Source of the DNA: Macrostomum lignano
Lineage: Eukaryota
Assembly (NCBI GenBank): GCA_002269645.1
Contig: NIVC01000051.1
Span: forward strand, 186,001-250,000
Length of the DNA stretch: 64,000 nucleotides
Direction: 5' to 3'
Numbering within the stretch: the first letter of the stretch is position 1; every line of letters begins with the position of its first letter. Shown one piece after another: positions 485 to 1,218 of the stretch. Both the position numbers and the translations under genes were made by a program. Below the pieces are notes generated by a model. It was not told where the DNA came from and did no database searches. It was given only the letters and a program-made list of their open reading frames with translations.

Positions 485-1218
485 ATGACTCGAGGTCAAC
501 TTCGTCGGCCTCCGTGCCACGGTGCAGCTGGAGGCCGACTGCCCCTGCTGGCTCTGCTAGTCGTCTGCTGTCTCTCTGCCGTGTCCGCGGCGGCCACGAC
601 GCCTCAGGCCGAGGAGACGATTAACGAGATGCAGGCAGCTGACTTTGTTCGCCAGCTGGACAGCAGGCTCGGTGCCAGGGGTCAGCCGCGGCCGGAGAAG
701 CGCGCCAACCCGATGAACTGCAACCAGCGCTGCGAGAGGGGCGACATTCTCGTGTTCAAGGCCTACTGGAGGCGCCACTACTCGCATAGTGAGCTCGATA
801 GATAGATAGATAGATAGATAGATAGATAGATAGATAGATAGATAGATAGATAGATAGATAGATAGATAGATAGATAGATAGATAGATAGATAGATAGATA
901 GATAGATAGATAGATAGATAGATATATAGATAGATAGATAGATAGATAGATAGATAGATAGATAGATAGATAGATAGATAGATAGATAGATAGATAGATA
1001 GATAGATAGATAGATAGATAGATAGCAAACCAAGCCTCATGAACTCATGAAATCTGTCAACCACAGTGAACTTCGTGGACTTTCTCCGTGACCTTGTGGT
1101 GTACTCTGCCTACTACCCGGAGCTGAGGGCCTTCAAGCCGCTGGTTGACCAGGCTGTGCAGAACTACGAGCTGTGCCGCTACGTCACCTGCTCTACTGAC
1201 TACCTCGGCCCTGGCTGA
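485..1218 (+). CDS. Secreted prepropeptide (neuropeptide/hormone-like), 151 aa, 2 exons (485-788, 1067-1218)
   Basis: ATG at 485. Hydrophobic signal LPLLALLVVCCLSAVSA. Phase-1 intron: GTGAGC donor at 789, CACAG acceptor ending 1066. The spliced frame continues MNFVDFLRDLVVYSAYYPELRAFKPLVDQAVQNYELCRYVTCSTDYLGPG to tandem TGA TGA (1216-1221). KR at aa 72-73; terminal Gly. Confidence 0.8.
797..1025 (+). repeat. (GATA)n microsatellite, ~57 units, intronic
   Basis: Directly visible; starts 8 nt after the donor at 789. Confidence 0.98.

Follow-up and report, generated by a model that had tools for sequence, protein, structure and literature searches.

What kind of product is encoded by a small two-exon gene that combines an N-terminal signal, a dibasic site, four cysteines and a terminal glycine, and that fits no known family? 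This question is raised by positions 485 to 1218 of a 64,000-nucleotide stretch of the Macrostomum lignano genome (hereafter, the window; contig NIVC01000051.1, assembly GCA_002269645.1), where an initial annotation, made from the letters alone, had proposed a hidden precursor of a disulfide-bonded, amidated secreted peptide. The explanation that we favor, with a probability of roughly 45%, is that the gene, Mlig020079, encodes a lineage-restricted prohormone-type prepropeptide, which would give rise to a probably amidated, hormone-like ligand of ~9.2 kDa. That the protein is secreted, cleaved, disulfide-paired, amidated and used in signalling is our inference from the features described below.

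Read without splicing, the ATG-initiated frame at 485-805 encodes 106 amino acids and terminates within a GATA repeat. Joining 485-788 to 1067-1218 (exons of 304 and 152 nt, 456 nt together) yields instead a 151-aa product, with a TGA stop at 1216-1218. The splice donor reads CATA/GTGAGC at 788/789 and the acceptor CCACAG/TG at 1066/1067, and the codon that spans the junction, A+TG, specifies Met102. Both the truncated frame and the spliced product had been described in the initial annotation, and all its sequence statements and residue numbers hold: K72-R73, C79, C83, R85-G86-D87, R96-R97, C138, C143 and, just before the stop codon, G151, with a predicted mature part, A74-P150, of 77 aa. The parts of the gene are the following.

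421-430, + strand: possible TATA box, tgcTATATATtt, ~55 nt upstream of the ATG, suggested by sequence reading
485-788, + strand: coding part of exon 1, 304 nt, spanning Met1 through base 1 of codon 102 (Met), as in the annotated BOX15_Mlig020079g2/g3 CDS
485-592, + strand: predicted signal peptide, approximately residues 1-36, with a basic n-region, the core LPLLALLVVCCLSAV and a c-region of small residues, VSAAA
593-697, + strand: mildly acidic pro-region, approximately residues 37-71, poorly conserved, with pLDDT <50
698-703, + strand: Lys72-Arg73 dibasic site, directly N-terminal to the conserved domain and kept in the paralogue Mlig014117; putative cleavage site
704-788, + strand: first part of the predicted mature domain, A74-H101, with Cys79 (719-721) and Cys83 (731-733), from sequence and AlphaFold2
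789-1066, + strand: GT..AG intron, phase 1, 278 nt, its position and phase shared with the paralogue
1067-1212, + strand: second part of the predicted mature domain, from the remainder of codon 102 to Pro150, carrying Cys138 (1174-1176), Cys143 (1189-1191) and the TDYL tail
1213-1218, + strand: Gly151 codon, kept in the paralogue, then TGA; candidate amidation donor
1515-1520, + strand: AATAAA, the sole canonical poly(A) signal within 780 nt 3' of the stop

Most of the intron is taken up by (GATA)57.2 at 797-1025. The exons are G+C-rich (65% in exon 1 and 59% in exon 2 vs 46% for the whole window), and the position of the poly(A) signal suggests a 3'UTR of ~300 nt. At the position equivalent to the possible TATA box, another genomic copy of the gene, L001, carries TTTATAT.

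The two-exon model is borne out by public annotation: splicing yields a protein that matches GenBank PAA62743.1/PAA92458.1 (BOX15_Mlig020079g2/g3, "hypothetical protein") at 100% identity and PAA71708.1 (Mlig020079 g1) at 99%, the latter being distinguished by R56H. The NIVC01 annotation was based solely on RNA-seq data and assembled transcriptomes (StringTie, TACO and the de novo assembly MLRNA150904, followed by TransDecoder; PMC5730564), so that the 788/1067 junction already has transcript support through that annotation. Hence, the gene was not hidden, as originally supposed; it was annotated from transcripts and escaped only a prokaryote-style list of open reading frames. Mlig020079 is an annotated but uncharacterised gene, deposited as a hypothetical protein. 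The 223-aa UniProt entry A0A1I8IWQ3 ("BCDHK_Adom3 domain-containing") is probably an older, erroneous model of the same locus (window 409-1218, + strand), in which a +1-frame ORF at 409-624 is mixed with the true frame, and a donor placed after codon 63 (AGG G/GT) omits the KR site along with Cys79/Cys83. This entry, probably a prediction artefact, bears a misleading name and lends no support to a kinase-related function.

Macrostomum lignano is a neopolyploid with much duplicated sequence (PMC5730564; PMC10733133). Mlig020079 is represented by three near-identical genomic copies (L001, L002 and L003, the latter being the copy in the window, whose first 2 kb lie at offset 9516 of L003), with intact reading frames in 3/3; tblastn across the window detected no second gene copy or paralogue there. 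The introns of the three copies (793, 614 and 278 nt, respectively) contain GATA and GACA arrays and are bounded by GT..AG in every case. The coding sequences of the copies differ at 0-1 per 456 sites, and in the flanks, taken as 1 kb upstream plus 600 nt downstream, mismatch rates range over 0.3-3.7% among the pairs. Little can be learned from the window and L002, whose upstream sequences are almost the same (0.3%). Between the window and L001, the flanks have diverged by 2.2%, so that ~10 coding differences are expected, against a single one observed (binomial P = 5e-4); in this more diverged pair, the coding sequence is conserved approximately ten-fold better than the flanks. This pattern shows purifying selection and speaks for a functional gene.

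Several other features of these loci deserve mention. The intron of Mlig020079 is a near-pure microsatellite that varies strongly in length among the copies while the splice sites and the coding sequence remain unaffected; in the L001 copy (repeat at 10316-11053), a long (GACA)n array follows the (GATA)n array. A run of 12 G at window 186-197, interrupted in L001 (GGGGGGGAGGG), is possibly a homopolymer tract whose length tends to vary or to be misassembled. Approximately 600 nt downstream of the gene, a 14-bp minisatellite, GTTCCAATGACTGG, extends over window 1839-2712 (~63 copies, 85% matches) and yields several spurious minus-strand repeat ORFs. At 3 kb downstream of the gene, Ty3/gypsy-like pol ORFs of the LTR-retrotransposon type (RVT_1, RT_RNaseH, Integrase_H2C2 and rve) occupy window 4014-7845 on the minus strand, and the next annotated gene downstream of the L001 copy is a T-box gene. 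Farther along the window, a 237-aa ORF (37657-38370, + strand) matches the Pfam family Cornifin/SPRR with E = 1e-16; the protein probably consists of Pro-rich, low-complexity repeats, or else the match is one of composition.

An exhaustive phmmer search over 1.84 billion representative proteins yielded only M. lignano proteins, among them one further relative, BOX15_Mlig014117 g1-g3, plus a 487-aa repeat protein (P0005, E = 8.5e-5). We do not accept the latter as a homologue: only the signal tail and the pro-region were aligned, at 24-25% identity, and the conserved domain was missed. Mlig014117, a protein of 150 aa with 46% identity to Mlig020079, is also present in M. lignano in three copies. 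In g1 and g2 (L005 and L006), the exons are 301 and 152 nt long, and a phase-1 intron interrupts the equivalent Met codon, with the borders ...AATA/GTAAGT ... TTCAAG/TGAAC. In g3 (L004, NIVC01000903.1), a 1104-bp element absent from g1 and g2 is inserted inside exon 2 (7061-8164). Its 12-bp terminal inverted repeats (CAGTGTTGGGCA...TGCCCAACACTG), together with the 8-bp target-site duplication (GATTTGCC), give it the look of a non-autonomous hAT-type transposon. In the annotation, this insertion is taken for a non-canonical intron, but given that the g1 and g2 copies lack it, g3 is probably a disrupted copy.

The other searches gave no relative outside M. lignano. When Pfam-A was scanned with hmmscan at E<=10, neither paralogue matched any family, whether entered as the full protein or as the mature domain alone; a sequence profile search of the PDB gave only chance-level matches to Sec7/cytohesin (E ~0.05), and a single-sequence PDB search gave no match. 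With Foldseek, neither the full-length nor the mature-domain models had any PDB hit with E<1, and the mature-domain model had none below E = 1 in BFVD. In a word-indexed search of 5.8 billion clusters, Mlig020079 retrieved only M. lignano entries and Mlig014117 only itself; a profile built from the two aligned sequences returned no candidates, probably owing to the word filter. Thus, the original impression that the protein fits no known family, along with the profile and structure comparison proposed to check it, was upheld by Pfam, PDB sequence, Foldseek and large-scale protein searches. Mlig020079 and Mlig014117 form a small family that, among the databases searched, is seen only in M. lignano.

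Two other explanations are that the locus is a chance ORF or annotation artefact, or that its product is intracellular and resides in the mitochondrial intermembrane space as a twin-Cx3C/CHCH-like protein. Small Tim and CHCH proteins contain two Cx3C (or Cx9C) motifs separated by 11-16 residues and lack a signal peptide. The Cx3C motif here is superficially similar to those of small Tim proteins, and the long intronic microsatellite might be taken as a sign of a spurious model. Yet, the annotation is transcript-derived, the three copies are intact and better conserved than their flanks (window vs L001), and the diverged paralogue shares the intron and has evolved with a dN/dS of 0.31. The cysteine pattern is Cx3C-x54-Cx4C, that is, a Cx3C and a Cx4C motif 54 residues apart rather than a twin Cx3C/Cx9C, and is preceded by a hydrophobic N-terminal signal of the classical cleavable type. 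Both the artefact and the intracellular readings are effectively excluded.

We then turn to the organization of the precursor. The initial annotation had read it as a signal peptide, pro-region, KR site, cysteine-containing domain and terminal Gly, and this layout is real: in a within-species comparison, Mlig014117 keeps the KR site, all four cysteines and the Gly, the elements whose conservation was to be checked. The strongest Kyte-Doolittle 11-mer comprises residues 21-31 (mean 3.04) and no second hydrophobic segment is present. With the basic n-region and the small residues after the core, this hydropathy heuristic points to the N-terminal signal peptide characteristic of prohormones processed by convertases and PAM, and the (-3,-1) rule, also a heuristic, suggests cleavage at residues 31-39. 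The N-terminus of the paralogue is similarly hydrophobic.

In both proteins, a KR pair immediately precedes the conserved block (EKR/ANPMNC in Mlig020079 and DKR/FFRVMNC in Mlig014117), and this is where conservation sets in. Identity between the paralogues is 38% in the signal region and 27% in the pro-region, which has large indels and changes in character from acidic in Mlig020079 to Ala/Pro-rich in Mlig014117; after the KR, identity rises to 57% in the mature domain, a contrast drawn from one paralogue. The mature domain has evolved with dN/dS of 0.31 at dS ~1.1 (Nei-Gojobori, 80 aligned codons). Four cysteines in the Cx3C ... Cx4C arrangement and a TDYL motif after the last of them are common to both proteins, and both end in a Gly that could serve as the amide donor, ...YLGPG* in Mlig020079 and ...YLMG* in the one paralogue, where the would-be amide-bearing residues are Pro and Met, respectively. 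The conservation of KR, Cys and Gly is that seen between two paralogues of one species. As far as can be read from sequence, the combination of a divergent pro-region, a dibasic site at the domain boundary and a constrained domain ending in Gly is the classical prohormone pattern.

A different reading of the same features is that the protein is secreted but undergoes no proteolytic maturation, such that the ~115-aa chain left after signal removal is the product, and the KR and Gly are incidental. In its favor, Mlig014117 has an additional KR (FKRV), with no counterpart in Mlig020079, that lies inside the helical domain and is surely not a maturation site, so that a dibasic pair by itself does not amount to cleavage; furthermore, it is from one paralogue that the boundary KR and the Gly are known to be conserved, and a low-confidence helix is predicted in the pro-region (residues 42-63). 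Nevertheless, we consider the absence of processing unlikely: the pro-region is far less conserved than the domain and riddled with indels, conservation begins right after the KR, and the terminal Gly is retained even though the residues that precede it differ (GPG vs MG).

Not all the motifs that had caught the eye fared equally well in this comparison. The RGD at residues 85-87, which had been singled out as a feature, aligns with SFN in the paralogue; a conserved, exposed RGD, as in disintegrin-like integrin ligands, is therefore not a property of this family. It had also been suggested that cleavage at the internal RR (residues 96-97) could produce a two-chain, disulfide-linked product. 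The paralogue has AI at these positions, and in Mlig020079 the RR falls within a confidently predicted helix, so internal cleavage at R96-R97, and with it a two-chain product, appears unlikely on the strength of the model.

The predicted structure is in accord with this division of the precursor. In the AlphaFold2 model of the full-length protein, built from a 3-sequence alignment, pLDDT is below 50 for residues 1-75 and 88-91 across approximately residues 80-147, with helices at 79-83, 87-98, 104-117, 119-122, 125-142 and 144-147. The mature construct, E71-G151 (81 residues), was modeled with a mean pLDDT of 82.5 and a pTM of 0.69 as three main helices, the last four residues being disordered. 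Overall, pLDDT in the mature domain reaches 88-94 from alignments of only 2-3 sequences. In the model, a short N-terminal helix carries Cys79 and Cys83, and the last one carries Cys138 and Cys143, suggesting that two disulfide staples probably link Cys79/Cys83 to Cys138/Cys143.

Among known systems, the closest likeness is to the crustacean hyperglycemic hormone type. The six cysteines of CHH/ITP/MIH hormones form three disulfides. In type-I CHH/ITP precursors, a precursor-related peptide is followed by a dibasic site and a helical, disulfide-bonded hormone that is amidated at the C-terminus (PMC7560641). The superfamily is ecdysozoan and is defined by six conserved cysteines (PMC7560641). Mlig020079 and its paralogue share with this superfamily (PF01147) the signal, the poorly conserved precursor peptide, the dibasic site, a predicted all-helical, disulfide-stabilised hormone and an amidation signal, and the predicted mature size is similar, 77-78 aa compared with 72-80 aa for CHH/ITP. 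This is a likeness of organisation, seen in both paralogues, and not homology. Membership fails since both M. lignano proteins have four cysteines (Cx3C-x54-Cx4C) instead of six, the PF01147 profile gives no match even at E<=10, and no PDB structure of the MIH/CHH/CHH-L fold was listed by Foldseek at E<=10; moreover, the host is a flatworm rather than an ecdysozoan. The resemblance to CHH/ITP is one of analogy.

Closer to M. lignano phylogenetically, flatworms possess PC2-processed prohormones and amidated peptides (PMC2953531). The PC2-dependent prohormones of the planarian Schmidtea mediterranea (npp, spp, eye53 and 1020HH) belong to the same phylum; like the predicted precursor Mlig020079, they are secreted, confined to a lineage and marked by dibasic sites and amidation, and many are orphans (PMC2953531). 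The difference is that planarian prohormones mostly yield short linear peptides, whereas Mlig020079 would give a large folded domain, and the large protein searches revealed no sequence similarity to deposited flatworm proteins outside M. lignano.

Two further comparisons are less apt. Calcitonin and DH31 are peptides ~31-32 residues long that end in a conserved Pro-amide; calcitonin also bears a disulfide ring at its N-terminus. The terminal Gly-Pro-amide had been taken as a hint of such peptides, but the predicted C-terminal Pro-amide of Mlig020079 is the only point of likeness: the paralogue would end in Met-amide, the mature domain is 77 aa rather than ~31-32 aa long, and Mlig020079 has neither the N-terminal Cys ring nor a Pfam match. 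Plant alpha-hairpinins and the CS-alpha/alpha kappa-toxins of scorpions are two-helix hairpins of ~25-40 aa stapled through a Cx3C/Cx3C pattern. The M. lignano domain recalls these peptides in its two pairs of closely spaced cysteines, each pair on its own helix, by which the N-terminal helix is likely stapled twice to the C-terminal one, but it differs in having 77 aa, three main helices, and a Cx3C/Cx4C pattern with a 54-residue spacer, and PDB searches gave no sequence or structural match.

The features considered so far are shared by another class of secreted proteins, and the main alternative to the hormone-like reading, only somewhat less probable, is that Mlig020079 encodes an exocrine gland product, such as a prostate protein of the seminal fluid, a pheromone, a peptide of antimicrobial or toxin-like nature, or a component from adhesive or shell glands, which would be secreted outside or into the mating partner, perhaps with KR cleavage and amidation kept. 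A signal peptide, a small disulfide-stabilised helical domain and restriction to a single lineage fit such a product equally well, and a family that has duplicated and diverged (46% identity, dS ~1.1) is typical of lineage-specific secreted proteins. Lineage-specific secreted gland proteins that could look alike are abundant in Macrostomum; PMC5977470 and PMC7336406 describe numerous new secreted transcripts limited to the prostate, as well as reproduction genes that evolve rapidly, in this genus. In contrast, a dN/dS of 0.31 reflects constraint on the mature domain, unlike the pattern in fast-evolving seminal-fluid proteins, and the conserved terminal Gly and dibasic boundary are more typical of peptides of the regulated pathway, although toxins share both. 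The gene IDs appear neither in the full texts searched nor in the supplementary text files of the M. lignano papers examined; their absence from the supplementary tables of the reproduction-gene study PMC7336406 counts weakly against a gland role, as these tables may use other identifiers.

Under the hormone-like reading that we favor, the precursor would mature in the following manner. The N-terminal signal peptide would direct the protein into the ER, where the C-terminal 77 residues would form a compact, mainly three-helix domain, with Cys79/Cys83 probably linked to Cys138/Cys143. A convertase of the PC2/PC1 type would then cut after Lys72-Arg73 and remove the fast-evolving pro-region; the identity of this enzyme is a guess, given that the KR sites lack the furin-type P4 Arg. 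The exposed Gly151 would be converted by amidating enzymes to a Pro150-amide, and the resulting product, of ~9.2 kDa with a near-neutral pI (~7.9), would act as an extracellular neurohormone- or hormone-like ligand. Its predicted average mass is ~9,230 Da, obtained from 9,235 Da for the reduced free acid by subtracting ~4 Da for two disulfides and ~1 Da for the amide. A more far-reaching version of this scheme, in which Mlig020079 and Mlig014117 are flatworm-specific, amidated, doubly disulfide-stapled three-helix neurohormones of 77-78 aa, convergent with the ecdysozoan CHH/ITP, with a fold absent from the PDB and acting through a receptor, is less likely.

To our knowledge, nearly every peptide signal described in flatworms is short and linear. 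Secreted proteins that are orphans occur commonly in these animals, and if Mlig020079 is a gland product, it would be another lineage-specific secreted protein, ordinary in this respect. If, on the other hand, the prohormone reading is correct, a folded, amidated protein hormone would be available in a genetically tractable flatworm with transgenesis and RNAi; a 9-kDa helical, stapled and amidated ligand that has a conserved paralogue would widen the flatworm endocrine repertoire, because the known signals are nearly all short and linear, and would provide an independent parallel to the CHH/ITP hormones as well as a candidate new small fold. Either way, the practical benefit is modest but tangible: two "hypothetical proteins" of M. 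lignano now carry an annotation that can be tested, in the form of a processing site, a mass and a modification, all predicted.
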